Of a stretch of 64,000 nt of DNA, positions 1-52,102 are shown piece after piece. How positions within the stretch are numbered: position 1 is the first letter of the stretch; every line of letters begins with the position of its first letter. The position numbers and the translations under genes were made by a program. Origin of the DNA: Rhodosorus marinus CCMP1338 (taxonomy: Eukaryota > Plantae > Rhodophyta); assembly GCA_029953675.1 (NCBI GenBank), contig JAMWBK010000012.1, positions 1 through 64,000 on the forward strand. The letters run 5' to 3'. The notes under the pieces were generated by a model. It saw nothing but the letters and a program-made list of their open reading frames with translations. It was not told where the DNA came from and did not search any database.

Positions 1-458
1 AGACTAACGTAACCCCAGACTAACGTAACCCCAGACTAACGTAACCCCAGACTAACGTAACCCCAGACTAACGTAACCCCAGACTAACGTAACCCCAGAC
101 TAACGTAACCCCAGACTAACGTAACCCCAGACTAACGTAACCCCAGACTAACGTAACCCCAGACTATCGTAACCCCAGACTAACGTAACCCCAGACTAAC
201 GTAACCCCAGACTAACGTAACCCCAGACTAACGTAACCCCAGACTAACGTAACCCCAGACTAACGTAACCCCAGACTAACGTAACCCCAGACTAACGTAA
301 CCCCAGACTAACGTAACCCCAGACTAACGTAACCCCTAACGTAACCCCAGACTAACGTAACCCCAGACTAACGTAACCCCAGACTAACGTAACCCCAGAC
401 TAACGTAACCCCAGACTAACGTAACCCCAGACTAACGTAACCCCAGACTAACGTAACC
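1..458. repeat. Terminal telomeric array, 16-bp unit CCCCAGACTAACGTAA (~28 copies; C-rich on +, i.e. a left chromosome end)
   Basis: Near-perfect tandem repeat from base 1 with strong C/G strand asymmetry; only two variant units (A>T near 167, AGAC deletion near 337). The same unit recurs as short remnants at retroelement junctions. Confidence 0.93.
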
Positions 459-528: not shown

Positions 529-623
529 CCCAGACTAACGTAACCGCGTACACTTTACTGAAGAACTCCCTATTGGAGCCCATTAAGAAGCAATAAGGAT
601 CCTATTGGTCAGCAAAGAAACCC

Positions 624-1538
624 CTAATGGGTTGTGTGGCTACGTTCTAAGATAGGGACGATGTCATAGTCTGCTTCGTCGACACGACGTGCCTGGGTGG
701 CAAGGATAGCGTTTCCTTTCCACAAAGTGCGGTTCAAGATCGCCCGAGCCTCACTTACTTGCGTTGCCCGCTGATCCAGGTGTATAGTCGCTTCCTTGAG
801 GAACTCACTCGCTTGTTGTCCCATCTGCCCAAATGTTTCCAGGCAGAAGGGGACGAAGATGTCGTCGTTATGTTCTCCGATACTGTCACGGTATTTGGAC
901 TCTTTAAACTTTTCCGCTTTCCGTGCCGCATACCCGGTCTCCCAAGACGCTTTGTGGAGGTGTGTTCTTTGCAAAGGCGAGGTCACCTTCACATCGATCA
1001 CGTAGAGCTTGCCTGTTCGTGGGTGTCGGGCTAGAATGTCAGGCCGAAGCCGACTGCCTTGGTAGTGTCCGGTCGGTTCTATTGTCACTTCTAGTCGCCA
1101 TTGTCTCAGCACTGTCGCCAGGGCGTCCCTGACCATGTTATGCCGAATTGTCCAACTGCCGGTAGAGCTGGTGCAGTGGTGAAGGCGTTGAATGCCTGCA
1201 GCGTCGTGTGGTTGGGAACATATCGTACACGTACCAAGTATTCGTACACCCGGCAGGGGTAATCCCAACAGTTGTCGAAGGCTCAGGTTCAGTTCTCCGC
1301 TACTTAGGCCGCGTCCGTGTTTCCTTGGCAAGTCTCGCAGCCAAGTACCCCCTCCTGATCCCTTGCAGGAGCGTATTCGCGCACGTGCCGTCTCGCTGAT
1401 CTCCGCGTTCTCCACCATTTCCTCGAATGCCCGTCGGTGACTCCAGTTGGAGAGGAGTTTTGGGTTGAACCGATCAAGGGCCTGTCGGGTGGTGTGTGCG
1501 GGTTCTCTGCTTGTTCTTGGCTCTCCAACGATTGCCAT
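624..1538 (-). CDS. Family A ORF2 C-terminal part: CCHC zinc finger + restriction-like (PD-(D/E)xK) endonuclease; out of frame with the RT part
   Basis: CTIC...HHC, RHNMVRD, RPDI...VIDVKV, KESKY, FVPFCLETFG motifs typical of RLE non-LTR elements. Confidence 0.9.
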   Translation of the reverse strand: MAIVGEPRTSREPAHTTRQALDRFNPKLLSNWSHRRAFEEMVENAEISETARARIRSCKGSGGGTWLRDLPRKHGRGLSSGELNLSLRQLLGLPLPGVRILGTCTICSQPHDAAGIQRLHHCTSSTGSWTIRHNMVRDALATVLRQWRLEVTIEPTGHYQGSRLRPDILARHPRTGKLYVIDVKVTSPLQRTHLHKASWETGYAARKAEKFKESKYRDSIGEHNDDIFVPFCLETFGQMGQQASEFLKEATIHLDQRATQVSEARAILNRTLWKGNAILATQARRVDEADYDIVPILERSHTTH

Positions 1539-3775
1539 TCTGTTAGGCGGAGTATGGGGGCCGGTGTTCCTCGTGCCAGGCAGCGTTTTGAGTGGAGGCT
1601 CGCTTCGATTAGTTGTGCTCCAAGTTGATCCGTCGAGTGGAGCAGGGGTCGAATGTGATGGTGCTCGGTCAGGTTCGTCGATGTGCAGGCATCGAGTAGC
1701 GCTCCTAGGTGGCTAGATCCAGTCCAATTGAGCTTCAGAGTCTGTCGCCAACTGCTGAAGAAGGCGAGGGGTTGTATTCGTGTTCTCATCGCTAGGCCTG
1801 CGCCACCCCATCGGCAAGGGAGCTGGATCTGCGCTTCGACCACGTCTTTTGCGGGTCCTGTGAGGCCCTGGCCTTCGAGGAGCGAGCCGCACAGTTTGTC
1901 GAGTTCCAGGAGCGAGATGCGATCGGCTTCGCGTGCGAGATTGGCTCCGTATTGTAGGGCGAGCGTGCGTAGAGCAAAGTCTAGACGCGGTCCTGCGCAG
2001 TAGCGGAATAGGCACAGTTTAATTGGTAGCTCAGTGGTCGGTAGACGGATGACCTCTTGGACGAGTTTTTCATGTTCTCGTTGTAGCTTCCTGTTCGCGT
2101 CTTGGACGTAGGTCCGTGTGCCAATAGGGATGGAATAAAGTTGGATTCCGTCCCGGGTGACATGTACGTCGGGAATTTCCCTGTTGACGAGTCTGGTCGT
2201 CGGCAGTTGGAGTCCAAAAAGCTCGCATTTCGTCCTTTGAAGTTGTGCGCCTATTTCGGGGAGGTGGTGCTCGCTCCAGTGTAGCGCTTCTTTCACGTCC
2301 TTCAGAGGGCCAAGTAAGGTGAGGTCGTCGTGGATTGCGCTAAGGGTGATCCTCGGAAACCGGTCTCGTAGTGCTCGTAGGAGTGGGGAAAGGGCGAGCG
2401 CGTGTAAAGCAGGTCCCAACGGATCGCCTTGTTGGACTCCAGTCCAGGCTCGGAGCTGGAGCCAGTCATCGACATCGCTGTCTCGCCATCCGAATTGGCG
2501 TGGGGCGCTCTCGCCTCGTGGTCCGTAGCTCATTGTCATAAGCGACTTCAATTCGGGGAAAGCTAGCTCGATGATACGGTTTGCGAGGCGTCGGTCGATT
2601 CTGTTGAACGCGTTTGCGAGATCAAGTTTGAGGAGCACGTCATTCGGGCGCGCTGCGAGGTGGGCTTCCGCGAGGTGGATGGCGTGTTCGCAGCCGCCGC
2701 TGACCGAGATGCCGAGTTGTTCCGGGAGCAGAAAGTCGCGAAGGGGCGTGGCGACAGCGCGAAGTGTCCATTGGGTGACGGCCTTCCGCAGTACCTCAGG
2801 AATCCCTAGCGGGCGTAGGCGAAGAGGGTACCCTTGTCTAGCTTCGGCAGACGTTCGCTTGTCTTTCGCGAGGAGTCGGTTGCTGCGCATGGCTTCGAGA
2901 AACACGTCAGGGAAGCTCTCCGGAGTGGTGGCAAGCTTGCGAAGGAAGCGTACAAGTACCGGTTGCGTTGTCATGGTGAGACTTCGCAGATGTTCGGCTT
3001 TGAGTCCACTCGGCCCGGGGGCTGTGGCGTACGGTAGGTGTTCCAGCGTTGACAGGAGGCTCTCGTCAGAGGCCAAAGTCGGGTCCCATATATTGCGTTG
3101 CAGTCCGTTGAGCTTTGCCTGTAGGGCGTCTTCAAGCTCCGAGGAGAGCGTTGCGGCCTCGTACTCAGGGAAGAGCGTAGTCAGAACGCGCCAGGTGGCA
3201 GGAGTCTTCGAGGCAAGATCGGTGGCCAGTAGGAGTTGGCTAGACTGGGACATACGTTGAGCTTTGGCGAGTTGTAGGGCTCGTTTCTGTCGGTGGCGGG
3301 TCTGAGGCGGCGGAGGTACGATACACTTGGTGTCAAGGGTTTTGCTGTGAGCAGTAAGGTGTTCCCACACCGTGGAGAACCTTCCGTCCATAACGGCGAG
3401 CATCTGCGCAGAAGGGGCCAGGTCGCCTGTGTAGCCGAGTGCGAGACTGGGGAGAGCGAAGATGAACAGGCGTGACAGGTTCGGCGCTGACGTATCAAGG
3501 GCAAGTTCCAGGGCTTTCGACATGAGATGGTTCCAGCGTGTTTTCAGGTTATCGGGGACGAATTGGCGAGTAGGCGTCGGAGCCTGAGTTAGCTGCCACC
3601 AGCGGTTGCCATTATCGGTTACGTTGAGAGTGAAGTCGTGCAGAGACGAGAGCCAGGCGTGCGAGTCGGTCTCGAAGAGTGACTGCGTCGAAGTGGGAGG
3701 TCGTTGGCGACGAGCACGAGCACGGCGGGATGAGCGAGAGCGGTTCGGAGTATATTCGTCTGAGGAGCTGCTCAT
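1304..3775 (-). CDS. Family A ORF2: reverse transcriptase (frameshift near 1470-1540 separates it from the RLE part)
   Basis: LRPLGIPEVLRK, QLGISVSGGCE, LDLANAFNRIDR, GVQQGDPLGP, AIHDDL, thumb LPCRWGGAGL. Confidence 0.93.
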   Translation of the reverse strand: MSSSSDEYTPNRSRSSRRARARRQRPPTSTQSLFETDSHAWLSSLHDFTLNVTDNGNRWWQLTQAPTPTRQFVPDNLKTRWNHLMSKALELALDTSAPNLSRLFIFALPSLALGYTGDLAPSAQMLAVMDGRFSTVWEHLTAHSKTLDTKCIVPPPPQTRHRQKRALQLAKAQRMSQSSQLLLATDLASKTPATWRVLTTLFPEYEAATLSSELEDALQAKLNGLQRNIWDPTLASDESLLSTLEHLPYATAPGPSGLKAEHLRSLTMTTQPVLVRFLRKLATTPESFPDVFLEAMRSNRLLAKDKRTSAEARQGYPLRLRPLGIPEVLRKAVTQWTLRAVATPLRDFLLPEQLGISVSGGCEHAIHLAEAHLAARPNDVLLKLDLANAFNRIDRRLANRIIELAFPELKSLMTMSYGPRGESAPRQFGWRDSDVDDWLQLRAWTGVQQGDPLGPALHALALSPLLRALRDRFPRITLSAIHDDLTLLGPLKDVKEALHWSEHHLPEIGAQLQRTKCELFGLQLPTTRLVNREIPDVHVTRDGIQLYSIPIGTRTYVQDANRKLQREHEKLVQEVIRLPTTELPIKLCLFRYCAGPRLDFALRTLALQYGANLAREADRISLLELDKLCGSLLEGQGLTGPAKDVVEAQIQLPCRWGGAGLAMRTRIQPLAFFSSWRQTLKLNWTGSSHLGALLDACTSTNLTEHHHIRPLLHSTDQLGAQLIEASLHSKRCLARGTPAPILRLTEWQSLESQEQAENPHTPPDRPLIGSTQNSSPTGVTDGHSRKWWRTRRSARRHVREYAPARDQEGVLGCETCQGNTDAA

Positions 3776-5292
3776 GATTGAGTCGACGAGAGGGAGTCGG
3801 GCGTGAGGTCGTCGACGGCGTTGGCAGGCTTAGGGCGCTTAGTGGGTGGAGCCACTTGTCTCTTGTCTTGGGCCGTCGAAAGTCCTTGCATCGGCTCTGC
3901 AGGGGTCACTGGTTGATCGCTAGTGGTGGAGGGGTCAGGCTCCGAGTCTAGTGGATCACGGGCTGTCGCGGCAGGCGTCTCAGGCGTGTTGTCCTCCCGA
4001 GCGGCTGGGACTTGGGCAGAATCAGCGCTATGCGTAGTCGCTGCGAGGGGTTCCGCACTCTCCCTCTCCAGTGCCGCCGGTTGAGGGTCAGCTACCCGGG
4101 TTCGGTCCAGAGAGCGTGGCTCTCTGCGCTCGGTTGTTGTCGAGTGCTCTGGAAGCTCAGGGTCGGAGAATGGCACGCGCAGGCAACTGTCGGGTGCTCG
4201 TTGAGCGTGAGCGTGGAGGCTGGCCAGGGTGCGATCGAGCTCGGCCCTGACGTGGCCCAGGAGTGCCTCTCGGTTGTTGGGTGGGAGACTCCTGCGATTG
4301 GTAACAATCCGCTGGATCCGTCGGTAGCGGAGCAGGTTGTGGATCAGTGCAGCGCGGGGATAGTCTGCCGGTTGGTGACGGAGCTTTTCCCTCATGCTCA
4401 GGTATTCGTGTGACGTTGGAGAGAGCTTGACAGCTTGGATACGTTGATCAGGAGGCAGGTGTGCTCCTCTGGTGGGTTCGAAGGCCCCTGCGTTGGTAGC
4501 GTCGCGGAGTAGTTGGAAGGCGGTATGATGAGCGATGACGTGTACATGATGATCAAAGTAGTCCAGCTGGAGCAGCGAATTTTTCTGAAGGCCGGCTAGG
4601 CGCTCGATATCCCAAGCATGATGGGCCTTGCTTCTGGTGGAGTCCCGAGGTCGAGCATTGAGTAGCACAAATGCATCAACGTCCTTCTGGCTCTGGTACT
4701 GCAGCCCATGAATGCTCGCGAAAAACGAGCGATTGGCAGCTGCTGGGGTCTGGTTGGCGCGGACACGTGTCGTCCAGCTCATTGGTTGAGGTTGAGCTCG
4801 AGTCCTTGTCCGTGCTTGCTCATTGGCCGTTGCGAGATCTGGGAATGCATTGGAATCGAGATCACGTGTCTCGGGAGATCGCGGGCGGGCTGCTGCAGTG
4901 GCGTAGTTTGCTGGTTCGTAGACAGGGAGGGGGCGTTGTGCCCTCGGGGCAGCTTTTTGTGGCGTCGTAGTCAGATTGTGAAGGAGTTGAGCCTCGGTGC
5001 CATTGGCGTGTGCCTGGGCTAAGAGACCCATAAACCGCAGCATAAGCCCATTGTAGAGCGGGGTCTTATGCTTGGGCGCGTCGAGATGCAGCTTCAGCGC
5101 TCCGCAGCTCAGGTCAATAGCCAAGGGAGTAGGTACGTCGTTGTCAAGTGCAGATGCAGTTGTAGGCTCAGAAACAGGTACGGGCAGAGGCTCGGGTCCG
5201 TCTGCCCTCAGGCTAACGGCCGGGAGGTCTTCCATCGTTGCGTCTGTGCAAAAGCCCCCCCCATCCGGAGGCACGGGCTCGAGAGTAGTCAT
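3772..5292 (-). CDS. Family A ORF1 (~506 aa from ATG 5292; putative RNA-binding, RRM-like core plus coiled coil)
   Basis: Long ORF whose TGA overlaps the ORF2 ATG (ATGA, 3772-3775); core aligns by eye with B and C ORF1s (xNxRP motif); N-terminal part homologous to 24010-24355. Confidence 0.75.
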   Translation of the reverse strand: MTTLEPVPPDGGGFCTDATMEDLPAVSLRADGPEPLPVPVSEPTTASALDNDVPTPLAIDLSCGALKLHLDAPKHKTPLYNGLMLRFMGLLAQAHANGTEAQLLHNLTTTPQKAAPRAQRPLPVYEPANYATAAARPRSPETRDLDSNAFPDLATANEQARTRTRAQPQPMSWTTRVRANQTPAAANRSFFASIHGLQYQSQKDVDAFVLLNARPRDSTRSKAHHAWDIERLAGLQKNSLLQLDYFDHHVHVIAHHTAFQLLRDATNAGAFEPTRGAHLPPDQRIQAVKLSPTSHEYLSMREKLRHQPADYPRAALIHNLLRYRRIQRIVTNRRSLPPNNREALLGHVRAELDRTLASLHAHAQRAPDSCLRVPFSDPELPEHSTTTERREPRSLDRTRVADPQPAALERESAEPLAATTHSADSAQVPAAREDNTPETPAATARDPLDSEPDPSTTSDQPVTPAEPMQGLSTAQDKRQVAPPTKRPKPANAVDDLTPDSLSSTQS

Positions 5293-5370
5293 ATCACTCG
5301 ATAAGCGTTCGTAGAAAGAATGAAAGTGTAACTTTATCACCACGATAAACTCCAAAGTCCAACCCCAAAT

Positions 5371-5404
5371 CCCAGACTTTTTTAACCCCAGACTAAACCC
5401 CAGA
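5371..5404. repeat. Variant telomere units at the A 5' / B junction
   Basis: cccagact...aaccccagactaaaccccaga. Confidence 0.75.
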
Positions 5405-5421
5405 TCGCAGCGCCCACTGAG

Positions 5422-6387
5422 TTGCCACTTTGCGTAGGACCTCCGGCACGCCTATTGGGCGGATCCCTGCCTTGGCCTGGGAGTTACCCCCCCTGTGCTG
5501 GCTTCGAGAAAGGCAGAAGTCTACTGCTACGCAAGGCTCGTAGCAGAAGGGGTGAGAATCGCCCGGGCGCGGTGGCGAGTTGGCGCAAGACCCGAATCAG
5601 TGCTACCTGAGTCTGTTGGTTCGCCCCTTGCAAATGTTCCGCGCGCATTCCACTCGGTCCAGGGCTCGTCCCTTGAGGTAGTCGTGCCACGATTGAGAGG
5701 AGGCCTTCGTCTGCAGCCGTTTTTGGATCCCACCGCCTCTTCAGTGTGTCGTTGTCCGTCGTGAGTAGGCCTTGGAGGGCTTCCACAATCTCCACCGGTG
5801 AATCCACACTGGCGGGGCTCGGAAAGAGCTGTTGTAGTTGCCGCCAGGTAGCCGCTGTGAAAGGCGCCATTTCGGTGGCCTCGAGTCTTCTTGCAGCATC
5901 CGAGAGGCGGCCGAGTCGTGCTAGTTTAAGTGCTTGTTTGCGGCGGCCATCGACTCGTCGACGAACGTCTTCGGCACCGTGTGGTGTAGGTGGGGGTTTC
6001 ATTGAGGCGGCTTTCTCCTCAAGGGCCCCCCCAGACCCGCTGGAACTCTCCTTCTAGTACATGTGCGACCTGTACCCCTGTGTCGAGGGTGGAGTGGCCC
6101 AGGACCAGACCCGGAAGGCCGACGAGAAGCAGGCTCGCTAATGGAGGTGCTGTCGCGTCCAGAGAAAGCTCGAGGGCAGCCCGAAGAAGCCGGCTCCATG
6201 TAGAAACGTGTGCTCGGGGCACGAAGCGTCGTGTGGGCACCGGGCAATGTGTGATGCGCGTCCAATGCCTCCCCTCCTCCGTGATCTCAGCTACGAAAGC
6301 GTTCCAGCGGCAAATCCAGGCCTCCCGGTCAGAGAAGAACAGAGGCTCTTCTCGTGGGCGTTTACGTCCCCTGCGTCTGGACGGCAT
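5422..6387 (-). pseudogene. Family B ORF2 N-terminal fragment (frameshifted, truncated)
   Basis: RHWTRITHCPVPTRRFVP, ALKLARLGRLSDAARRL, SPGPSG; homologous to 21553-22520. Confidence 0.8.
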
Positions 6388-7970
6388 TATGATTGCTCGT
6401 TGTCCTGCGCTTCCTGCTGAACCGACGGGTTTGTATTGGCTGCAGTTTCAGGTTGTAGTCCATTCTCGCTCGGTGTGGGGTCGAGGGGAGCTGGTGTCAT
6501 TTCTGCATCCGTGCTAGATCCGTTGGAAGACCGGCGCGAGCGCTTAAGTTGAGGAGGTTCCGGCAAGTTGCACGAGAGTTCCGCATGGGGATTGTCCTCT
6601 TCTTCCACATCCTGCGGTACTTGGGATGTTCCACCGGAGTCACCCTGAGTGGCAACAGTCCCACAGGCTGCCTGTGCATCGTCCGGAGACGACGAGGCTT
6701 CAGCGGCTGCGTTTGGTGCGGCTGCAGTCGTTAGGGGTTCCGCGCTCTCCCTGGATACCGCAGGTTGCTGTTGAAGGGCTTGTAACTTTTCAAGCCGTTG
6801 GTCCAGCATCTCGTGCACTCGGGCGAGAGTTGTAAACGAGAGATGTCGACGGCTCAGCCGCGCGCGGATGCGTATGATCTGCTCGATCGCTCGTCTCAGC
6901 GTTTGAGCCCTGACATCTCCGCCGGCGAGTCGTTGCCGCTCGTTGAACCCCAGCAGGTTATCCGCCTCTAAACCGTGCCCGGTGTACAGGCTCACCTGTC
7001 GATCGGGGTGTCGCATGGTAAAGGATCCGAAAATCCCAGTCCGGAACACACCCCGGCTGATTGCGCTTTGGAGAAGAGGAATTGCATCAGGGTGGCACAC
7101 GAGGCTCACGTGTGAAGAGATAAAGTCCAAATGCGCCACATACGAGCCGGGAATGCCCAACGCCCGGCAGAGGACCGTAGTGAAGTCAGAAGCAGCCACC
7201 TCATCCTGTCGTGGGGGACGGATATTTCGGAGGGTAACAAGCACTGGCGTGGTCTCAGGGCCCCAGCTGGCCCCTCCCACTGTGGCGTGTAACTGCTTCA
7301 GGGCGGCATGTTGCGTCTGCGGCCCAGGCCTTCGCATGGTGCGGATGGGTGTCTCTACACCGTTCTCTGGTACTTCTACCGCCGAAACCGCCGCGTAGGT
7401 GGGTCTGGGGGTGTCATTCCCAAGGGCCGGGAAAGCCGTCTCAAACCGGACACCCGCAGGGACACCTGTCCCGACCGGAACTTGATTGAAGCCCGTTCCG
7501 GCCGCAAGTTGATTGACCACCGCCGTCGGCCGGTGATGCGCCGAAGCTCCCGAGGGATTCGAAGTCTGTGCAGAAGCTTGCCACATGTAGGGCTTCTGTG
7601 CAAGTTCCGTGAGGCGGCTGGTGACATTATGTATCTCTGTGGTACTGTTAATTCGCGAGTAGAGATTGAAGACTGCTTTGTAGAAGTTCGCGATGTCCTG
7701 CTCCCCAATTCCGAGGGCGTGATAGCACTGATCGTAGCTTCGAAGTTGGTGGAGGAACGTGTTAGCGGGAGAGGATGACGTAGAAGGCTCTGTCCGACTC
7801 CCCTCCTGGCACGGTTCTTCTGGGCGTAAAGTAGTCGCTTGTAGTCCATCATGTGACCCATGCCCGTCCTCTCGTTCAGCAATTGGAGAGGCAGGCAGCA
7901 TTCCGCTCATTGCACCGGTATTCTTCGAATTCCCCTCCCCAAACGAAGGGGAAGTGCCAGTGTTTGGCAT
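6387..7970 (-). CDS. Family B ORF1 (527 aa; RRM-like core)
   Basis: Open 527-aa frame; TAA overlaps the ORF2 ATG (TAATG, 6385-6389); TYAAV and LVTLRNIRPP motifs; C-terminal half homologous to 20892-21553. Confidence 0.8.
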   Translation of the reverse strand: MPNTGTSPSFGEGNSKNTGAMSGMLPASPIAEREDGHGSHDGLQATTLRPEEPCQEGSRTEPSTSSSPANTFLHQLRSYDQCYHALGIGEQDIANFYKAVFNLYSRINSTTEIHNVTSRLTELAQKPYMWQASAQTSNPSGASAHHRPTAVVNQLAAGTGFNQVPVGTGVPAGVRFETAFPALGNDTPRPTYAAVSAVEVPENGVETPIRTMRRPGPQTQHAALKQLHATVGGASWGPETTPVLVTLRNIRPPRQDEVAASDFTTVLCRALGIPGSYVAHLDFISSHVSLVCHPDAIPLLQSAISRGVFRTGIFGSFTMRHPDRQVSLYTGHGLEADNLLGFNERQRLAGGDVRAQTLRRAIEQIIRIRARLSRRHLSFTTLARVHEMLDQRLEKLQALQQQPAVSRESAEPLTTAAAPNAAAEASSSPDDAQAACGTVATQGDSGGTSQVPQDVEEEDNPHAELSCNLPEPPQLKRSRRSSNGSSTDAEMTPAPLDPTPSENGLQPETAANTNPSVQQEAQDNEQS

Positions 7971-8000
7971 ATTTTACCCCAGGCGAACCAAACCTACAAA

Positions 8001-8067
8001 CTTAATTTCGAACCTTATCCAATAACCCCAGAAACCCTTAATTTCGAACCTTATCCAATAACCCCAG
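8001..8067. repeat. 31-bp direct repeat (period 36) at the 5' end of family B, each copy ending in TAACCCCAG
   Basis: cttaatttcgaaccttatccaataaccccag at 8001-8031 and 8037-8067. Confidence 0.85.
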
Positions 8068-8072
8068 TAACC

Positions 8073-8945
8073 GTGAGCTTTATTGGGCAGTCGCCTAATG
8101 CGACGTAACACTAAGCCGATTGCTATCTAGGGAATCACTCACAACAACCCCGCTACCGGGGTCTCATGCTACGTTCAAAAGAAAAAACAGGAACCAGTGG
8201 GTTCTCCAACTGGTCCGCACGTAGAGCGCCAAGCGCAATCGCCGCGTTGCCCTGCCATAGGATCCTGTTTAACTGGGATCGTGCATCCCTCAGCTCCTCA
8301 TCTCGATGCAACAAGTGTTTACAACTGTCCCGCAAAAAGTCTTGCGTCAACCTCCCGCTCCGCCCAAAGGTCTCTATCGCGATCGGGATGAACTTCTCCT
8401 CGGGCTTTTCCACACTCATCGCCTCTTTATAGTGCGCGAGCTTGTAGTTCTCCGCCAGTTTCGCTGCATACCCGTTTTCTGCACTGCCACGCCTTATGTA
8501 CTTTTCCTGTAGCGGTGAAATCACCGTCACATCGATCGCGTACTTTTGAAAGGTCTTTGGATGGGTCGCCACGATATCTGGTCGCAGCTGGTAATTCTCA
8601 AAATACCTCTGCGGTTCTTGCTGTATGTCAAGAAAATTCCATCGGTTGAGCCATCTCCCTAGCTCCGTACAGAGCTCGTCGTGCCGTCTCTGCCATAGTC
8701 CCGTCGATGTTGGACAGTGTTGAAATCGTTGCACCCCATTTGGGCCATGTTTCCTACGGCAACTGGTGCACTGCTCCGTTGTCCGCAACCCCGGAATCGG
8801 CAGCCCCAGCAGTTGTCGAACATTTACCTGCAATTCCTGTGAGTCCAGCTTTCTCGGCTCTAGCAACGGTAGTTCCCGCAGCCATACCCCGAACCCGAGC
8901 CGGCCGCCGATCGGATTCTTGCACGGTGTTCATGCGAAACGCCCG
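8073..8945 (-). mobile_element. 5'-truncated family B 3' portion (CCHC + RLE, ORF 8153-8866)
   Basis: CTSC...QHC, RRHD, RPDI..YAIDVTV, FIPIAIETFG; flanked by telomere remnants 8060-8072 and 8946-8967. Confidence 0.9.
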
Positions 8946-8967
8946 CTAACCCCAGACTAACGTAACC

Positions 8968-9684
8968 GCGTACACTTTACTGAAGAACTCCCTATTGGAG
9001 CCCATTAAGAAGCAATAAGGATCCTATTGGTCAGCAAAGAAACCCCTAATGGGTTGTGTGGCTACGTTCTAAGATAGGGACGATGTCATAGTCTGCTTCG
9101 TCGACACGACGTGCCTGGGTGGCAAGGATAGCGTTTCCTTTCCACAAAGTGCGGTTCAAGATCGCCCGAGCCTCACTTACTTGCGTTGCCCGCTGATCCA
9201 GGTGTATAGTCGCTTCCTTGAGGAACTCACTCGCTTGTTGTCCCATCTGCCCAAATGTTTCCAGGCAGAAGGGGACGAAGATGTCGTCGTTATGTTCTCC
9301 GATACTGTCACGGTATTTGGACTCTTTAAACTTTTCCGCTTTCCGTGCCGCATACCCGGTCTCCCAAGACGCTTTGTGGAGGTGTGTTCTTTGCAAAGGC
9401 GAGGTCACCTTCACATCGATCACGTAGAGCTTGCCTGTTCGTGGGTGTCGGGCTAGAATGTCAGGCCGAAGCCGACTGCCTTGGTAGTGTCCGGTCGGTT
9501 CTATTGTCACTTCTAGTCGCCATTGTCTCAGCACTGTCGCCAGGGCGTCCCTGACCATGTTATGCCGAATTGTCCAACTCCCGGTAGAGCTGGTGCAGTG
9601 GTGAAGGCGTTGAATGCCTGCAGCGTCGTGTGGTTGGGAACATATCGTACACGTACCAAGTATTCGTACACCCGGCAGGGGTAA
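8968..9684 (-). mobile_element. 5'-truncated family A copy (717 bp, near-identical to 546-1262)
   Basis: Direct match at offset 8422 with one visible substitution; 3' end at CGTAACC|; 5' end fused to a telomere unit through TAA microhomology. Confidence 0.92.
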
Positions 9685-9724
9685 CCCCAGACTAACGTAA
9701 CCGCGTAAACCCCAGACTAACGTA
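9681..9724. repeat. Interstitial telomere units interrupted by a 5-nt family A 3' terminus (GCGTA)
   Basis: gtaaccccagactaacgtaacc-gcgta-aaccccagactaacgta. Confidence 0.8.
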
Positions 9725-10344
9725 TTCCCAGGGCGGTATAGCAGTGGTCGTAGCTCTGCAGTTGGTGGAGAAAGGCGACAGCTGGGTCTGCTGTGGCCTG
9801 CTCCGCTGCACCCTGTTCCGCATTCCTCTCTGCCTCCTGTTCTGCTCCCCTATGCTGGTGCTGTTGCTGCTGCTGCTGCTGCTGCTCTTGTAGCAGCTCT
9901 TTCGCCCTCTCCATTTCGCGGGTACCCGAGGTGTGTGGGCCCGCGATCACAAGAGGCTCGGGGTACGGCCCGCGTACCTCCTTCACAATCATACTTGTAA
10001 CTTTTTATCAGCTTTTTCCGTCGTTTTCAGGGCGGTATAGCAGTGGTCGTAGCTCTGCAGTTGGTGGAGAAAGGCGACAGCTGGGTCTGCTGTGGCCTGC
10101 TCCGCTGCACCCTGTTCCGCATTCCTCTCTGCCTCCTGTTCTGCTCCCCTATGCTGGTGCTGTTGCTGCTGCTGCTGCTGCTGCTCTTGTAGCAGCTCTT
10201 TCGCCCTCTCCATTTCGCGGGTACCCGAGGTGTGTGGGCCCGCGATCACAAGAGGCTCGGGGTACGGCCCGCGTACCTCCTTCACAATCATACTTGTAAC
10301 TTTTTATCAGCTTTTTCCGTCGTTTTCCACAAACAAAGCCGTCC
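9725..10344 (-). mobile_element. Tandem duplication (period 299 bp) of the 5' end / ORF1 start of a B-related element with a (CAG)n polyQ tract
   Basis: FLHQLQSYDHCYTAL matches B ORF1 FLHQLRSYDQCYHAL; two near-identical units start at 9729 and 10028. Confidence 0.8.
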
Positions 10345-10416
10345 TAACCCCAGACTAACCGTCCTGAAAACGCCCCCGAGACTAACGTAACCGTAAGCTT
10401 TACTAACCCCAGACTA
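10345..10416. repeat. Cluster of telomere remnants with a 12-nt B-type 3' terminus (gtaagctttact); inner edge of the dense distal array
   Basis: ctaaccccagactaacc ... gagactaacgtaacc|gtaagctttact|aaccccagacta. Confidence 0.8.
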
Positions 10417-20887: not shown

Positions 20888-20891
20888 TGAG

Positions 20892-23800
20892 TTTTCCGGA
20901 CTGGGATATTCGGATCCTTCACACAACGACACGCCGATAGACAAGTAAGCCTTTACACTGGCCAGGCGCTGGACCCAGACAACCTTCTGGGTTACCTCGA
21001 ACGTCAGACCATCGCTCCCGGGGATATCGCTCCCCACACGCTGAAGCGGGCCATCGAGCAGCTTGTCCGCATTCGTTCGAGGATCCGCAGGCGACAACTC
21101 TCCTTCCACACTCTCGCAGCGCTCTACGAGTTTCTGGAGGCACTACTAGAGCTCCTAAAAGGCAGACAAAATCCGCCTGAGGTACCCGGGGAGTGCGCGG
21201 AACCCCCTGGGCCTGCAGCCGCTTCGAACGCAGACCCTGAAGCCTCGTCCCTTCCAGGGGATGTACAGGCAGACCGTGGGAGAGTTGACGCCCAGGTTGA
21301 GACTAGCGCGACTTCCCAAGTACCTGAGAACGCAGCACACGAGGACAATCCCCATGCGGAGCTCCTCTGCAACCTTCCGGAGCCACCTCAACAGAAGCGC
21401 TCGCGAGTATCCGCCGATGGCACCGGACCGGATACTGAGATGACTCCGGCAGCCGTGGAGACTCCACAGGATACCACTGTGACACAGGTTGCCCTTGACG
21501 GCAACCATCACGCGATGGACACGCAGGAGAGCCAGGAAAACCCAGCGCAATAATGCCGAGCACACGTAGGGGAATCAAACGACGCCGCGACGAGCCTCTG
21601 TTCTTCTCGGATCGTCAAGACTTGATCAGGCGGTGGAGCGTCTTCGTCGACGACGTCACGGAAGGAGGCAGGCAGTGGACGCGCCTTACACACTGCCCGG
21701 TTCCCACACGGCGATTTGTGCCACGCGCCCAGGTTCAAACATGGAGCTGCCTCTTCCGTGCTGCATTAGAGCTCTCTATGGACAGCACCGCACCAACAAA
21801 CGCCAGCCTGCTTCTTGTCGGACTTCCAGGCCTGGTCCTTGGACATTCTACACTTGATGTTGGCATTCAGGTATCGCATGTGCTTGAAGGAGAATTCTCT
21901 ACGGTCTGGAGCGCTCTAGAGGACAAACAAGGCGTCTATGCTGTCGCATACTACCGCACCGCAAGGAGCTGAAGCGGTTCGACGCAAACATCTCGGGCGC
22001 CACAAGCGAGCGCTGAAACTAGCACACCTTGGCCGCCTTTCAGATGCAGCTCGGAGCCTACAGGCCACCGAAATGGCACCTTTTACCGCGGCTACGTGGA
22101 GACAACTACAAGCGCTCTTTCCCAACCCGATGGAAGGTGACTTAACAGACGAGATTGCACACGCCCTGCAATCTTTGCTCGCTCTGAATATCGAAACACT
22201 AAAGCGGCGGTGGGATTCAAGAAAAGATGCCGACGAGGGCCTCATGTCCATCGTGGCACGTCTTCCTCAGGGCAAGAGCCCAGGTCCTAGCGGTCTCCGA
22301 GCGGAACACCTCCAAGGTGCAACTCAACAGACGCAAGTGGCGTTGATTCGTGTATTGCGACAACTGGCGACCGCTCCTGAGAAATTTTTCCCGGCTCTGA
22401 CCCGCGCCCTTCGCAGTAGTCGACTCCTGCCGTTCGCGAAGCCTAACAAGGGTTCAGTGCCGCAGGAGCATCCCGGAGTTCGCCCTATCGGAGTACCAGA
22501 AGTTTTGCGCAAGGTAGCAACGCAATGGACTCTTCACGCGGTTATGGACAGGGTGCGTGAGCTCCTGGTGCCCTTACAACTGGGTATTGGAGTAAGTGGC
22601 GGGTGCGAACGCTCACTTCACGCGATCCAGGCCCATTTGTCATGCGAACCCGATTCGGTGGTCCTTCGGCTAGACCTAGAGAATGCCTTTAATGGCATCG
22701 ACCGACGCCTTGCCAAGCAACTGGTGGACGAACACTTGCCGGAGCTTGCACCAGGGTATAGACTTGGCTATGGAAGCGACAACGCGGACTCACCGACGCT
22801 CTGTGGCTGGCGATCTTCCCCTGGACAGAACGAAACCGACACCTCTCGCCTGACTCTCCAAGCAACTACAGGAGTCCAACAGGGAGATCCACTGGGGCCG
22901 GTGCTACATGCACTATCCCTGGCGCCCTTTCTAAGAGCGTTGCGAGCCAAGTTCCCCAACGAAACGATTGTTGCTATCCACGACGATATCACGATTGTCG
23001 GGTCGCTACAAGCCGTGAAGGCGTCCCTGGCATGGGCAAAAACTGTGCTCCCCTCTCTTGGAGCACGCCTGCAACTCGGCAAGTGCACTGTGTACGCGCG
23101 AACACTGACTACCACGCGAGTGGTCAACGATGAGATTCCTGGAGTGCAAGTGACCAGAGACGGAGTCACCATCCACTCGATACCGATAGGCAGCCGAGAA
23201 TATATCGAACAGGAGTGCCGGGGGCTGCAAAATATGCATGAGAAACTCCTTGAGGAAATTGCCAAGCTCCCACAACCGGAGCTTACGACGCAAATTGCCC
23301 TCTTCAGGTTCTGTGCAGAAACGCGACTAGACTATGTGCTACGATGCCTCGCATACGAGTTTGGAAGAAATCTGGCACGCGAGGCCGACGTGATGACCAG
23401 ATATCACCTGGAAATTCTATTCGGAGGCCTCGCTACGACAGCTGTAGAGGACGATGAGTACGCATAGCTGATCTCGGACCAAATCGCTCTGCCCTGCCGC
23501 TGGGGAGGTTTGGGTTTCGCTACTCGAAAGCGCGTCCAACCCATCGCGTTTTACTCGTCATGGAGAAACACCTTCCGGAACAATGAAGATGAATGGCCAT
23601 ACCTACGGCAGAACGCTCACCAGACACATACGAGCCGATGGATCAACGATGGTCGACTGCACAGCTGGCGGACCAGATCTGTGCATCGTCGCGAGCAATA
23701 CAACGGAGGCTCGGACCAGAAACCCCGCCGCGGATCTTGGCACTGACAACCCTGCAACAACCGCGAGAAACATCTCTTCGAAGCGCCCCGGGCGAGACTG

Positions 23801-24010: not shown

Positions 24011-26058
24011 CCCCAAGCCAAAGCCACGAAGTACAACGCCCTGATGCTGAAATTCATGGAACTTGCTGCACAAGCCCATGCCAGTGGCAACGAGGCTCAG
24101 CTCCTTCACACTCTGACTACAACGCCCCAACGACCTACCCAGACACCGCGCTTCCTAGCTGTCTACGAACCGGCATCCTACGCCAGCACAGCAGCCCGCC
24201 CCAGATCTCCCGACGCGCGCGATCTCGATGCTGATGCATATCCCGATCTCGCAGCAGCCAATGACCGCACACGCCCGACACCTCGACCTAGCAGCCGGCC
24301 AATGAGTTGGACGACACGTGTCCGAGGTAACCAGACCCCGGCAGCCGCGAGCTGACACTACCACACAACAAACCCGCTGGCGGCGCAAACAAGCACTCAA
24401 GCTCGCCCAACAAGGTCGCCTCTCTGACGCTGCATACCGCCTCACAGCCTCTGCAATGGCCAAACAGAACGTTGCCACCTGGAACCAGCTCGAAGACCTC
24501 TTCCCGGACCCGACAGACACCCCTCTCTCTGAGGATCTACAGCAAACCCTGCAGACACTACTTGCACAGGACAACGCCCAACTACGGGTCAGGTGGCTGG
24601 CCGGACAAGCCTCGGATGAGAGTCTACTCGCCAAACTGACCCTGCTGCCGAAAGACAAATGTCCCGGGCCCAGCGGGCTCCGCGCGAACACTTACAGATG
24701 CTAACGCGTGAGGCACACCCGCACCTGGTACGGTTCCTGAGACAGTTGGCCACGGCTCCGGAGCGGCTCCCGGCAGTCCTGACCAGGGCTCTCCGCAGCA
24801 GCAGGCTCCTGCCGTTTGTCAAGTCCTCTACTACTGGGCCCCCACCTGCGCACCCTGCTGTCAGACCTATTGGCGTTCCTGAGGTCCTACGAAAGCTAGC
24901 GACACAGTGGGTACTAGGTCACCTGACCACACGACTTCGGGAGCTCCTCGTCCCCCTGCAACTAGGCCTTGCCGTCAGTGGAGGTTGCGAACGGTCCCTG
25001 CACGCAATACAGGCCCATCTCTACTGTGAACCACAATCGGCAGTTCTACGACTCGACCTGGCGAATGCGTTCAACCGAATTGATCGGAGTATTGCCAAAC
25101 AACTAGTCGACCGCCATTACCCAGAGCTGGCAGCCATCTACCGCCTGGGATATAGAAGCAACTGCGAGGACTCACCTACGCTCCTTGGCTGGCGCCCCAA
25201 AGCTACAGACGGAACACTGCATCCAGATCGACTACACCTACAAGCGCAGACGGGAGTACAACAAGGAGATCCTTTGGGACCTGCCTTACACGCCCTCTCC
25301 CTGGCGCCTTTTCTCGAAGCACTGCGGCAGAAATACCCTGAGCTGACTACTGTCGCCATCCATGACGATATCACGCTCGTGGGCCCCCTGGAGTCCCTGA
25401 AAGATGCCCTACTGTGGAGTCAAAATGCCCTCCCTACCATTGGGGCGGAACTACAGCCTCAAAAGTGCACCCTATTCGGTTACCACATAGCATCCCCTCG
25501 ACTGGTTACCAGATACATGCCGGACCTCAATGTTTCTCGCGAAGGAGTAACCATACACTCCATTCCCATTGGGACGAGAAAATATGTGGAAGAAGCTTTG
25601 AGAACACTACAAAACAAGCATGAAACACTGGGCAAAGAGATAGCCCATCTGCCTCCTGAAGAGCTCAACACACAACTGGCGCTGTTCCGATACTGCTCGG
25701 AAACGAGACTTGACTACACCCTAAGGACAGTGGCTTACCACTACGGCAGAAGTTTAGCACGAGAAGCGGACTACAACACACGACTACAGTTGAAAAGGCT
25801 ACTAGGCTGTCTACAAACAGCCCATGCGGACGACCCTGACGGAACGCACCCGGCTTGGAAGCAGGTAGCACTCCCCTGCCGATGGGGGGGACTGGGATTC
25901 TGCACTAGAAGGCGCATCCAACCTATTTCTTTCCACACAGGGTGGATGCAAACCTTTGCAGCTAACAAGGGCTATTGGCCCCACCTACAAAAATTGTTAG
26001 AACGCACCCAGGAAGCTACACCACAGCTGCTCAACCCCCCGAGGACACTACACCGCTC
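24011..26058 (+). mobile_element. Divergent A-subfamily element: ORF1 fragment, internal deletion, RT (ORF 24659-26119), 3'-truncated
   Basis: ORF1 piece aligns with family A ORF1 (YEPASYA...MSWTTRVR); RT motifs GVQQGDPLGP and AIHDDI. Confidence 0.88.
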
Positions 26059-28531
26059 TACTGGACTTTACTGGACTTTACTGGACTGGACTTTACTGGA
26101 CTTTACTAGCATAGCCTGAAGCGCTACGCAAGGCGTGAAGATGAACTAATAACTAGGGAGGGAAGCATGCAACCCCAGGCGCCGATGGCGCGCCTCGGAA
26201 AGCATGTCGCTGGAATATCGCCAAAGGGAGACACTTAAACGCCTCAAGAGCGCCAAATATTCAGTAGGATGCTCAGCAAAACATTTCCGCAACCACTCTA
26301 AACCCGACTTATCCACGTGACCAAAGCTTTCCACAATGAATGGCTGGAACCGGTGAGAGCGACCCTCAGCGCAAGGCAGACTGGCCATGCTCTCAGCATA
26401 CCGTCGTTCCTTAACTCTTCGAAGGGCTGAAGCCGCGGCCCCCCGGCGGCGGGCGGCTGCGGTGAGGTGGGCAGATGAAACTAGCATAGCCTGAAGCGCT
26501 ACGCAAGGCGTGAAGATGAACTAATAACTAGGGAGGGAAGTATGCAACCCCAGGCGCCGATGGCGCGCCTCGGAAAGCATGTCGCTGGAATATCGCCAAA
26601 GGGAGACACTTAAACGCCTCAAGAGCGCCAAATATTCAGTAGGATGCTCAGCAAAACATTTCCGCAACCACTCTAAACCCGACTTGTCGACGTGACCAAA
26701 GCTTTCCACAATGAATGGCTGGAACCGGTGAGAGCGACCCTCAGCGCAAGGCAGACTGGCCATGCTCTCAGCATACCGTCGTTCCTTAACTCTTCGAAGG
26801 GCTGAAGCCGCGGCCCCCCGGCGGCGGGCGGCTGCGGTGAGGTGGGCGCTGGCCACGGGGCAGGTAATCGCAAGGTCCACATATGTTGAGCGTCTGGCAG
26901 CAGCGTCAGAGACGAGGAGATCGGCTATACAACGGGGCGGTGCAGAGTCCGAGATTGATCTGGGCAGTTCCGACTCAACCTCAACCGTATGCCCTATCCG
27001 AGTCAAAAATTCGCTGAGGATGTACTTGAGGCGAGTGTGACGCCTCGTACGGAGACCTCGCAACAGTCCGCAGGAACCCAGGAAGTGGTAGCCACAAGCG
27101 TCAATCCGGCTCTCACATCCCTGACAGAAAGACGGCCGATTAGAGTGCCACGGAGCCTGTGGCAAACCGAGATAGATCCGTGCGGCAGAACGGAACTGGA
27201 AAGCATCGAGACGATGACTCAATGACGACGGTAGAGTGGTTAACCACAAGTGCGAGAGGTGGCCTCCCATGCCGCGGAGACGAGCGGCAGTGGTAGGCGG
27301 CGTGAGAGGAGAATTGAGCATGACTGTGTGAGCGGCACTGTGTTGGCCCCAGGTGAGGCTATGTTGAATCACATCAGTGCGGGAGCTCCACAATCGGCTC
27401 AAACCCGGGTAGTCTGCAACAGGGGACCCGGGGCTAGCCTCTCCGTCATCGGCAAGAACTCGGTCGAGGGGAGAATCCTCAATCGCTTCAGCTCGTCCCC
27501 ATAACAGCTCCCTCCAGGAACGAAAGCGGGACCGATTTGCGTCCGGCACGGCGTTGCACCTCCTGAACGCGTGTTGAAGACCATCATAAATTGTCAAAAG
27601 CGGGGGCGGCAGGCTCACTGGATCCTCGTTGGTCAAAGCTCGAGCCAAGAGGCAGGCACTTCGCATCTGGAAGGTCACCAACGTTCGCAGCGCGGTAACC
27701 CAGGAGGCAACCGCCGCTGGCGAGCATACCAGCCCACGGTCTGCGACGCCGAATCCCCCTAATCGCAACGGTAGAGCGATCTGTGCATGAATAAAGTCCC
27801 TGTCGGGAGCAGCTTCAAGATCGAGGGGCTCATCCAAGAGCGTTCCCCAGTGTTGCAGGGTCATTTCGTCGGCTTTAGCCGCGATCCACGAGCCCCAAGC
27901 TGGAGGCAGGCTGCGCAACCAGTAGTTGAGTCTGGGACCGGCACAAAAGCGGGAAAGCAAGCAGGCCGATTGCAGCATGCTGTCGGGTAGGTGCTCAAGG
28001 GCGTCGGTGAGTTGCTTCTGCCGTGCCAAAACTCGCTCGCAGGATGCTTGGACAAAGTTTTCAGTCCCCAATCCGACGCCGTGGTGTTCGAACCCTTCAC
28101 GTTCGCTGATTAGTCGCAGAGTGGGTGGCAGAGAGTTCAGCGACACGTCCCTCGGGGGGAGAAAGCGACATTTTTCTGTTTCCACAGTCAAACTGACTCG
28201 ACGTGCAATCGCTTCGATCGCGGTCAGTCCCCTAGCCAGGGTGTCAGGGGTGCCCAGCAATGTTACGTCATCGTGGTACGCGCAGATTCGAAGATCCGAG
28301 ACCTCAGTCGACAGACGTAAAAGTACGAGCTGTAGGGCACAGGCATGAAGAAGAGGTCCGCAAGGGTCGCCTTGTTGGACGCCAGTATGTGCTTGAAAAA
28401 CTGTGCCCTCCGTTGTCAAGTAGGGGAGGCTCTCCCCTCCGTAAATACCCGATAGAAACGGCCACGCCTCCGGAAACACCCGTCGGAGCACCTCTAGCGC
28501 ATGCGTCCGCGACACGCTGTTGAATGCGTTC
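26059..28531 (-). mobile_element. Two stacked family C copies (26059-26480 short; 26481-28531 with ORF 26521-28515) with a long reiterated tail at 26059-26107
   Basis: Open RT-thumb-CCHC-RLE frame of 664 aa; tail (AGTAAAGTCC)n. Confidence 0.92.
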
Positions 28532-31490: not shown

Positions 31491-32519
31491 CACTTAAAAA
31501 AATCCCCAGGTGATCCTCACCTCGCAAATCCCGCTTCCAAGTTTCCACAAGAGTATACCACGGCCGGCCGGCCCACAAAACCCTAACAAGTCAACAGTTC
31601 CTTAAACCAACACATTCACAGTTCCCTATAGTCGCGCAGCTCGAAGGATGCTCCCAGACCAAGAGACGGCTACTACAAGAATTTGTGGGGACTTTATGGA
31701 CTGTCTCGCTATTGGAATCACTTTACTAGCAATGGAACAATCTTTAGAATATTGTAGTCACAAGCCTTTTGAGAATGCGGTCGCTGGTGGGTCCCAGGGC
31801 TACTTCCACAAGACCTTTTCAACTAGTTGCCACCGTGGTTCGGTTTGAGACTGTGAGGTTTACAATACAAATGCTCTTGGCCGGCATATAGCCTGAAGCG
31901 CTAGCCAAATGTGGAGGGGACCCAGGAGGTCAGTCAAGAAACTCGATACAGTCACGACAGTCCTCCCCGAACAACCCGACGGGGATCCGCTTAAAAAAGA
32001 AGCATACTGTTTACAGAAAACCAGCGAGCGATTCGAAGCCCCAAGGAGAGAATTCAACACCAAAACAGGTTGTACTACACCGATCCCAACCCGCTCCCAA
32101 CTTACCCCCAGCTGCGCACAGCTGAGCAACCCACCAAATATTCTTATTTCCTCCCAACCTCTGACACAAAGACATTCCCTCAGATTCGATCGAATATCAA
32201 GATTCTCCCCGCTTAGTAAATCAAAGCCCACTAAATCAAAAAACACCAGGCTCGTACCAAACTAATATTGACGTGCTATCTATCAATGGGGACCAAAAGA
32301 AAACAAAACCATGGAATATTCTTCTCCTAAGCGCACTTCGCCATGGGCTCTGTAAACAAGCTCCAGACTCATATACAGCAAAGTCGAAGTCCTATCACTG
32401 CCGACCAAAAAACGAATCCGGAGGGAATATTCTTAGCTAATTGTTTTGTTGTTTTTTTCCGGCGAAGGCATTTGTTAGTTGTGTAATCGAACACGATCAA
32501 ATTTGTTTTGTGTCGTTAA

Positions 32520-51927: not shown

Positions 51928-52102
51928 CCCAAATAGGAAAGGCCCCGCAACTCACCCACCCGGAAGACAGAAGTAGTTGCAAATGCAAACGACGCCCCGC
52001 GGAAAATCGAGGGGAAGGCGTACCAGAGGAAGCGCTTCCCGTAAACGAACACGCTCGCGACCGAAAAAGAAACAAAACCCCAATCCTCGACAGGGGATTG
52101 GG

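Follow-up and report, generated by a model that had tools for sequence, protein, structure and literature searches.

Long interspersed nuclear elements (LINEs) with a restriction-like endonuclease (RLE) are taken as simple, single-protein ancestors of the two-protein LINEs with an apurinic/apyrimidinic endonuclease (APE). SLACS/CZAR of the trypanosomatids, an RLE-class member of the CRE clade with two open reading frames (ORFs), stands as the main case known to break the single-ORF rule, and we know of no report of an RNA recognition motif (RRM) in its ORF1. MoTeR1 of Magnaporthe oryzae and Cnl1 of Cryptococcus are fungal, single-ORF RLE elements of the same clade that target telomeres of the TTAGGG type. 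The literature describes RLE elements as having one ORF (PMC5678591) and lists ORF1s with an RRM for APE-type clades only (PMC4120745); SLACS/CZAR targets the spliced-leader gene (PMC5814959), and PMC4640811 cites MoTeR (its ref. 15) as an element that targets telomeres. Here, we analysed positions 1 to 64,000 (forward strand) of contig JAMWBK010000012.1 of the red alga Rhodosorus marinus CCMP1338 (assembly GCA_029953675.1), termed the window below, which contains RLE elements of three families, A, B and C, that carry a separate ORF1 in front of the ORF2 encoding the reverse transcriptase (RT). An earlier note, made from the letters of this stretch, had named a single ORF as the norm for RLE elements and RRM-bearing ORF1s as typical of APE-type LINEs, in agreement with PMC5678591 and PMC4120745, respectively. 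It had further proposed that an RRM-like ORF1 was acquired by an RLE lineage.

Two features of APE-type LINEs are relevant for the comparison. SART1 of Bombyx uses a UAAUG stop/start overlap for the translation of ORF2, and the ORF1 protein (ORF1p) of L1 acts as an RNA-packaging chaperone. In general, RRMs in LINE ORF1 proteins occur together with accessory modules of a basic, CCHC or coiled-coil type, and the SART1/TRAS1-type ORF1p belongs to type I, with one or more RRMs and CCHC knuckles (PMC4120745).

The elements and their junctions are arranged in the window as follows:
548-5355, minus strand: element A, 3' end toward the telomere, with ORF2 at 624-3775 (RT, then CCHC/RLE) and ORF1 at 3772-5355
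3772-3775, minus strand: ATGA overlap in A, ORF1 stop codon TGA (3774-3772) over ORF2 start codon ATG (3775-3773)
5356-5401, minus strand: 46 nucleotides (nt) of telomere-like repeats in degenerate form (GGGGTTTAGTCTGGGGTTAAAAAAGTCTGGGATTTGGGGTTGG...), which separate the truncated ORF2 of B from the 5' end of A
5402-6387, minus strand: 5' third of B ORF2, aligned by tblastn to aa 31-340 (aa, amino acids) of A ORF2 and ending where A begins
6385-6389, minus strand: TAATG overlap in B, ORF1 stop codon TAA (6389-6387) and ORF2 start codon ATG (6387-6385)
7971-8072, minus strand: 5' untranslated region of B, two copies of a 36-bp unit, both with telomere-like AACCCCAG at their end; the 3' end of family D lies directly next to it
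8072-8953: family D element next to B
47338-50411, minus strand: C ORF2 (RT, CCHC, RLE), separated by a 31-nt spacer from the ORF1 upstream; broken near 49236-49395

The class of the elements was determined from ORF2. Pfam recognised RVT_1 in ORF2 (E 4.7e-13 in A and 1.5e-08 in C) and no other domain, and R2 proteins were the only relatives of the RT part in the Protein Data Bank (PDB). The C-termini contain CX2C...HX4C and, behind it, the motifs RRH/RHN, E, (P)D and D(V/L)K/A, which is the pattern of a CCHC knuckle plus a PD-(D/E)XK nuclease. In C, the corresponding residues (CQGCx8HFLGSC, RRH, E, ADL and VDL) could be aligned with the endonuclease region of R2 (E 1.5e-4 for the whole ORF); in A, they were assigned by inspection (CTICx..HHC, RHN, E, RPD and DVK), and the C-terminal domain of A ORF2 alone found no match in the PDB. 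An APE was searched for as Exo_endo_phos, and it was detected neither in any ORF2 piece (Pfam E <= 1) nor in the N-terminal 160 aa (E <= 10). Based on RVT_1, the R2-alignable CCHC/endonuclease region and the lack of an APE match, the elements therefore belong to the RLE-type non-LTR (non-long terminal repeat) retrotransposons, the class to which the earlier note had assigned them.

ORF1 is located directly upstream of ORF2 in A, B and C as well as at two further loci, L001 and L002. The latter stems from an independent sample (Logan SRR22824298) and encodes a full-length A-like ORF1, P0006, that is 30% identical to that of A and adjoins, with an 11-nt overlap (1557-1567), an ORF2 whose N-terminus is 44% identical to A ORF2. 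Unlike A, B and L002 with their overlaps, C spaces the two genes by 31 nt. The stop/start overlaps suggest that ORF2 is translated by termination-reinitiation or by frameshifting. The separate ORF1 in all families departs from the single-ORF description of the RLE group, which is a difference and not a ground for exclusion from it; the present elements are bicistronic, against the norm of their class.

The ORF1 genes and their parts are the following:
3772-5355, minus strand: A ORF1, 527 aa from a TTG, 506 aa from the first ATG at 5292
4426-4758, minus strand: core domain of A ORF1, about aa 200-310
4201-4383, minus strand: basic helical segment of A ORF1, about aa 325-385
aa 506 of A ORF1: KRPK cluster
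6387-7970, minus strand: B ORF1, 527 aa, ATG start
6966-7325, minus strand: core domain of B ORF1, aa 216-335 (AlphaFold2, Foldseek)
6768-6920, minus strand: basic segment of B ORF1 with two long predicted helices, aa 351-372 and 379-401 (AlphaFold2 model 1, predicted local distance difference test (pLDDT) score about 60; charge profile)
50443-51927, minus strand: C ORF1, 494 aa from a TTG, 469 aa from the first ATG at 51852
50893-51225, minus strand: core of C ORF1, about aa 235-345
aa 479 of C ORF1: KRAR cluster
20891-21541, plus strand: second B-like ORF1, C-terminal 40%, 56% identical; its own ORF2 follows at 21559-23584
24011-24352, plus strand: second A-like ORF1 fragment, aa 94-208, 63% identical; its own ORF2 follows at 24369-26002

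The ORFs of about 500 aa in A, B and C are present as the earlier note had described them, with the C gene lying outside the interval 3772-7970 to which it referred. Neither a CX2CX4HX4C knuckle nor a looser Cys/His cluster was found in the three proteins, and the core strings that had been aligned by eye are all present and alignable. The same holds for the YAxV/A-type motif ahead of the core (ANYATAAA in A, PTYAAVSA in B, ASYASVLR in C) and for the basic helical segment behind it, which has a net charge of +6 to +8 per 40 aa. The layout is collinear in the three families. It starts with an acidic N-terminal part containing an 'LSCGxF...LD' block, continues with the YAxV and FPxL motifs (which the A family has in swapped order) and the core, whose N-x-R-P behind strand 1 is invariant, and is completed by the basic helical segment, an acidic, Pro-rich tail and a K/R cluster 15-50 aa before the C-terminus. 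The basic helical segment and the K/R cluster are also conserved in P0006. The isoelectric points (pI) of the whole proteins are acidic to neutral (6.6 in A and 5.7 in B).

Homology of the ORF1s was evaluated at the sequence and the profile level. BLASTP aligned the A and B proteins with E 4e-6 (26% identity over 92 aa of the core), and it yielded E 0.07 for B and C and E 0.048 for A and C, the latter alignment being confined to the helical segment. Profile-profile comparison with hhalign resulted in E 1.4e-12 for the B family against the A family (relatives added; probability 97.7, 127 columns), E 4e-8 for the A family against the C family (probability 95, 146 columns covering core and basic helices), and E 0.003 for B against C directly. 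As A matches both the B and the C families, the homology of all three is transitive through A, and the kinship that the earlier note had read from its alignment is detectable. When 1.84 billion representative proteins were searched exhaustively with a HMMER profile, only 13 relatives were found, from R. marinus transcriptomes (EukProt/MMETSP) and from short contigs of Logan and JGI, and all of them are other copies of the same element group. A word-indexed homologue search with B ORF1 gave a single match, R. marinus NDN08_004843 (65% identity), and no match with A and C ORF1. A copy of C ORF1 that is 96.8% identical is present in R. marinus contig JAMWBK010000007.1. One locus, L003 (JGI 3300016967), looked chimeric and was left out of the analysis. 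The ORF1 family is confined to Rhodosorus-type data.

Between diverged subfamily copies, the dN/dS values of ORF1 were 0.18, 0.35 (second B-like copy) and 0.29 (second A-like copy), and ORF1 is therefore under purifying selection. Intact frames of about 500 aa have been kept in four families at 20-30% identity, and ORF1 fragments are found in the MMETSP/EukProt transcriptomes of R. marinus. The linkage to ORF2, the selection and the transcripts together show that ORF1 is a part of the element, that is, a conserved, selected and transcribed gene of it. It predates the split of families A, B and C, the ORF2s of which are 32-50% identical.

The fold of the core was predicted with two AlphaFold2 runs. 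The first run (B aa 185-420, four sequences) had a pLDDT of 54.5 and gave the order β-α-β-β-α-(α)-β followed by two long helices. The second run (B aa 211-345, 16-sequence alignment) reached a pLDDT of 72.9 and a predicted template modelling score of 0.64, with 10-residue blocks at pLDDT 86-91 across the core, and placed the elements of the B core as follows:
α0 217-231, β1 243-248, α1 260-271, β2 278-284, β3 287-292, α2 296-305, β4 327-333

Both runs agree on a predicted βαββαβ topology, read from the order along the chain. The β-α-β-β-α segments that the earlier note had recognised by eye coincide with the AlphaFold2 secondary structure, and β4 completes the ferredoxin/RRM topology. In Foldseek searches against the PDB, both runs ranked the RNA-binding, RRM-like domain of DbpA/YxiN first (E 0.02-0.04, probability 0.98-1.00; root mean square deviation (rmsd) 3.3-3.7 Å over about 90 columns; template modelling (TM) score 0.65 per 75-aa target). 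The list further contained the RRM-like domain of CsdA, RRM1 of RBM30 and the GUCT domain of DDX21, and the RRM-like top matches spanned E 0.02-0.13. The RNP2/RNP1 consensus was not found on β1 and β3 of the core; the N-[VIA]-R-P after β1 is the sole faint echo of RNP2. A by-eye alignment of 'LxVxNVRP...DFxxxFxxxLG' to RNP2 and α1 was not recovered by hhalign and was dropped. Pfam searches with the whole ORF1s yielded nothing meaningful, one xRRM match at E 0.24 being discounted. The predicted order of strands and helices agrees with the RRM-like fold that had been proposed; recognition as an RRM is not supported, with no Foldseek match at E <= 1e-3 and no RRM signal in the sequence. The models indicate that a ferredoxin-like βαββαβ domain is likely, and 'RRM-like' is a moderately supported label for it, best-ranked and non-exclusive. 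If this label is correct, the predicted domain would be a non-canonical RRM like those in DEAD-box helicase tails or in L1 ORF1p.

A search of B aa 211-345 against BFVD placed the baculovirus protein FP25K ('few polyhedra') at 7 of the top 40 positions, with a best E of 0.011 and none significant. A literature link between FP25K and ORF1p was not found.

The elements are inserted next to a repeat at the very start of the window:
1-458, plus strand: 29 tandem copies of the 16-bp repeat AGACTAACGTAACCCC (G-strand GGGGTTACGTTAGTCT), detected with TRF; the C-rich strand reads inward

A pattern search for the 16-bp unit resulted in 36 matches in the window, compared with 0.05 expected. Single units are found at element boundaries at 532, 8954, 9689, 9714, 10379, 20400, 23984 and 53886 (at least 8 internal units). 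On the G-rich strand, the transition to the repeat has one and the same register in families A, D and others, ...AC/GGTTACGTTAGTCT, where the slash marks the junction; the 3' junction of element A reads ...GTGTACGC/GGTTACGTTAGTCT. The junction sites are at 445-470, 532-560, 8050-8075, 8954-8985, 9689-9705, 10379-10400, 23984 and 53886. The common register implies either that the C-strand is nicked sequence-specifically or that the RNA pairs with the repeat through its 3' end (...UAC). The sense strands of the elements point toward the start of the window, and their 5' ends bear variant telomere-like repeats. The locus of NDN08_004843 lies 5-25 kb from the end of the 2.2-Mb contig JAMWBK010000007.1 among equally stacked, outward-pointing elements, including a C element. 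From its position and strand polarity, the 16-mer is probably the telomere repeat; it is far longer than the usual eukaryotic unit of 6-8 nt. The defined position, the single orientation and the terminal arrays are those of telomere-specific insertion, and we conclude that the window represents a chromosome end of the R. marinus type that is filled with telomere-repeat-specific retrotransposons. The R. marinus genome paper reports telomere-to-telomere contigs and mentions telomeres; neither the telomere repeat sequence nor these elements are described in it.

Taken together, we give a probability of roughly 0.55 to the reading that these are bicistronic, telomere-inserting RLE elements whose ORF1p, with an RRM-type core and basic helices, would act as an RNA coat or chaperone, as in other LINEs. 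ORF1p would be translated first from the element RNA, and ORF2 would follow by termination-reinitiation at the overlapping stop and start codons (ATGA, TAATG). The element RNA would then be coated or chaperoned by ORF1p through the RRM-like domain and the basic helices, ORF1p may oligomerise through its helices, and it may enter the nucleus via the terminal K/R cluster. The ORF2 protein would nick the C-rich telomere strand at the fixed register and prime reverse transcription there. ORF1p would thereby do for an RLE element what the ORF1 proteins of APE-type LINEs do for theirs; for RNA binding, reinitiation, oligomerisation and nuclear import, we infer these roles by analogy with LINE ORF1 proteins.

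Several results weigh against the chaperone reading. At the structural level, no Foldseek match against the PDB reached E <= 1e-3 in either run, the TM score of the DbpA/YxiN match is 0.41-0.44 when normalised to the query, and TnpA of IS200/IS608, ACT and other ferredoxin-like domains appeared at similar E-values. At the sequence level, Pfam at E <= 10 detected neither RRM_1 nor DbpA in any of the 16 members of the alignment, the sequence profile of the core had no match in the PDB, and hhalign of the core against approximate sequences of 11 canonical RRMs yielded E 0.098 over 9 columns and no signal. The alignment used for the model consists of 16 sequences from one narrow lineage. Moreover, no intact element is present among the A, B and C copies of the window. 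The A ORF2 is split by a frameshift in the overlap at 1304-1538, the B ORF2 stops where A begins, so that B is a 3'-truncated element, and the C ORF2 is broken. Finally, dN/dS among near-identical C copies is about 0.9 for both ORF1 and ORF2 (0.93); this value is uninformative because dead insertions evolve neutrally.

Among the alternatives, the one that survives best, though it is unlikely, holds that the predicted fold is unreliable or only generically ferredoxin-like and that ORF1p is a lineage-specific scaffold, oligomerisation protein or host-factor adaptor instead of a chaperone. The shallow multiple sequence alignment, the moderate pLDDT of the whole models (54.5 and 72.9), the lack of a significant structural or sequence match and the acidic to neutral pI of A (6.6) and B (5.7) would all fit such a protein. 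Against it stand the two AlphaFold2 runs, which place the same order of strands and helices exactly on the conserved blocks, the top rank of RRM-like RNA-binding domains in both Foldseek searches, and the strongly basic helical segment that follows the domain in every family.

We regard as doubtful, and as less probable than the scaffold alternative, that ORF1p is a targeting or tethering factor whose RRM-like domain binds G-rich single-stranded telomere DNA or a telomere protein and brings the ribonucleoprotein to chromosome ends, an idea modelled on proposals for HeT-A Gag or SART1 ORF1p; a possible telomere-localising role had been raised in the earlier note. RRM folds commonly bind single-stranded telomeric DNA, the Pof8 xRRM is weakly represented among the Foldseek matches, and the elements are strictly telomere-associated, joined to the repeat at one register and equipped with telomere-like repeats at their 5' ends. 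However, target choice in the studied site-specific LINEs lies in ORF2, namely in zinc finger/Myb motifs plus RLE in R2 and in the APE in TRAS/SART, and in family C, where a homologous ORF1 is kept, the copies of the window have (AGTAAAGTCC)n at their ends and are stacked on each other rather than on telomere units. For these two reasons, a telomere-targeting role of ORF1p is possible but speculative and less likely. Fainter still is the prospect of its more specific form, a Gag-like telomere-homing protein that would use its RRM-like domain to recognise the 16-nt repeat of the G-strand or the 5' telomere-like repeats of the element RNA.

A reading of the ORF1s as chance ORFs, as decayed ones or as pieces captured from host genes, with no role in the element, is very improbable. 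The lack of homologues of known function and the location of the window copies in defective elements would agree with it; for practical purposes, it is refuted by the selection (dN/dS 0.18-0.35 across subfamilies), by the frames of about 500 aa that stay intact in four families with 20-30% identity, by the conserved position and stop/start overlap with ORF2, and by the transcripts. The least probable alternative, by which the core would be an HUH-type single-strand nuclease as in TnpA of IS200/IS608, was rejected, for although TnpA structures are among the Foldseek matches (E 0.04-0.3) and A has H-V-H on strand 3 (HHVHVIAHH), H-x-H on β3 is found only in A, the second His being missing in B (HVS), C (DVL), P0006 (HVY), P0004 (HAQ) and P0008 (HAC), no conserved Tyr was seen on a following helix, and the TnpA alignments have rmsd > 8 Å.

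Further observations concern the elements themselves. No Pfam match to zinc-finger or Myb motifs was obtained in the N-terminal 160 aa of ORF2. Inspection by eye revealed that the ORF2 N-termini (A aa 35-85, 3530-3680; B 6150-6330; L002 1590-1760) keep three Trp residues with a spacing of about 20 aa (AW...(R)W...(R/P)W); this spacing is Myb-like, and the residues could form a candidate reader of the telomere repeat. RT motif C reads A[IY]HDD[LVI]T[LI][LV]G in all families (A ORF2 about 2300-2330, C about 49000), with His where non-LTR RTs, which usually have Y/F-A-DD, carry Ala.

At L001 (10362-13211) as well as in the window (5402-7970), a B-family element is cut inside ORF2, and the intact 5' end of another element follows outward. 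This truncation at two chromosome ends is more in line with erosion of the terminus and a subsequent new insertion or addition of repeats than with insertion at an internal site. The C copies of the window end in (AGTAAAGTCC)n and are stacked on each other rather than on telomere units; head-to-tail 5'-truncated C 3' ends, each ending in ...GGCTATGCTAATAAA, lie at 52100-53880 (minus strand) upstream of the full-length C and also at 26105-26847. As the copies end in this repeat rather than in telomere units, family C may prime on its own tail. Positions 9729-10327 consist of a perfect 299-bp tandem duplication with a (TGC)11 tract and a fragment like aa 65-91 of B ORF1, with telomere units on either side; it probably represents the 5' end of a further B-like element.

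The remaining genes of the window that were noted are as follows:
29346-31493, minus strand: ORF of 715 aa in which about 47 tandem 12-bp units (30165-30734) encode (MTQP)n; no Pfam match
33955-35208, minus strand, and 37000-38352, plus strand: divergent paralogues with a signal peptide and RTX-type calcium-binding nonapeptide repeats (Pfam HemolysinCabind E 1e-19 and 9e-38), a repeat type that is mostly bacterial and is here subtelomeric in a red alga
58688-60394, plus strand: gene encoding a sulfatase (Pfam Sulfatase E 2.7e-57) that carries a PKD domain at its C-terminus; moving inward past the element arrays, no clearly ordinary host gene comes before it

If the chaperone reading is true, a bicistronic RLE lineage with an RRM-type ORF1 would mean that the ORF1 chaperone was recruited independently or is older than thought. 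The limits of this view are a fold prediction of moderate confidence, one narrow lineage and the lack of an intact copy in the window. With its defined 16-nt target and fixed nick register, the system would be compact and suited for asking what ORF1p adds to R2-like integration. With these elements, telomere-specific retrotransposons are extended to the red algae, and a probable telomere unit of unusual length is documented in this group. Should the homing alternative be true instead, RLE elements would be a part of chromosome-end maintenance in a red alga, this would be a third independent case of ORF1-guided telomeric retrotransposition, after Drosophila and Bombyx, in the 'early-branching' class of LINEs, and RRM-type ORF1 proteins would predate, or would have been recruited recurrently across, the divide between RLE and APE.

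The comparison with known systems places the elements between several groups. Full-text searches of the literature found neither an element that unites RLE, ORF1 and RRM nor telomere-specific non-LTR elements in red algae. The R2 proteins are the nearest solved relatives of the present ORF2, and with R2 and the RLE group (R2, R4, NeSL, CRE, Hero) the elements share an RT followed by a CCHC knuckle and a C-terminal PD-(D/E)XK nuclease, the lack of an APE, the site-specific insertion into a repeated target and the 5'-truncated copies. They differ in the ORF1 of about 500 aa added before ORF2, in [IY]HDD instead of Y/F-A-DD in RT motif C, and in that no N-terminal zinc finger was seen in ORF2.

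The telomere-specific elements SART1/TRAS1 of Bombyx and HeT-A/TART of Drosophila are bicistronic and, in the known cases, depend on ORF1p, and the UAAUG of SART1 is the same arrangement as the TAATG of B; unlike the present elements, they are APE-type or lack an endonuclease, and the type I ORF1p has knuckles, whereas the present ORF1 has none. With L1 ORF1p, a type II protein that consists of a coiled coil, a non-canonical RRM and a C-terminal domain, the present protein has in common the lack of classic RNP motifs, the long helices and the location upstream of the RT. In L1, the helices precede the RRM, in contrast to the present ORF1, in which they come after the core. A relationship to L1 ORF1p was rejected, as the Foldseek match to 2ykp had E 0.35 and only rank 42, and a Pfam match to Transposase_22 was not found in ORF1. 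With neither the CCHC knuckles of type I nor the Transposase_22 domain of type II, ORF1 would fall under 'type V, unclassified' in the scheme of PMC4120745. The C-terminal domain of DbpA/YxiN, the best structural neighbour in both searches, likewise has an RRM fold without the RNP consensus; the likeness is confined to the fold, with 6-10% identity, no Pfam DbpA match and an unrelated context.

SLACS/CZAR shares the RLE class and the two ORFs, and no similarity to a SLACS/CZAR-like ORF1 emerged from the exhaustive profile search with the present ORF1. MoTeR1 and Cnl1, by their description, are RLE elements in telomere repeats with one orientation, arrays at chromosome ends and variant telomere-like 5' repeats, as are the present elements, which differ in the red algal host, the 16-nt target repeat and the additional ORF1. 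In summary, the elements of R. marinus combine features of MoTeR1/Cnl1 with those of SLACS/CZAR, and they add to these an ORF1 core with a predicted RRM-type fold.

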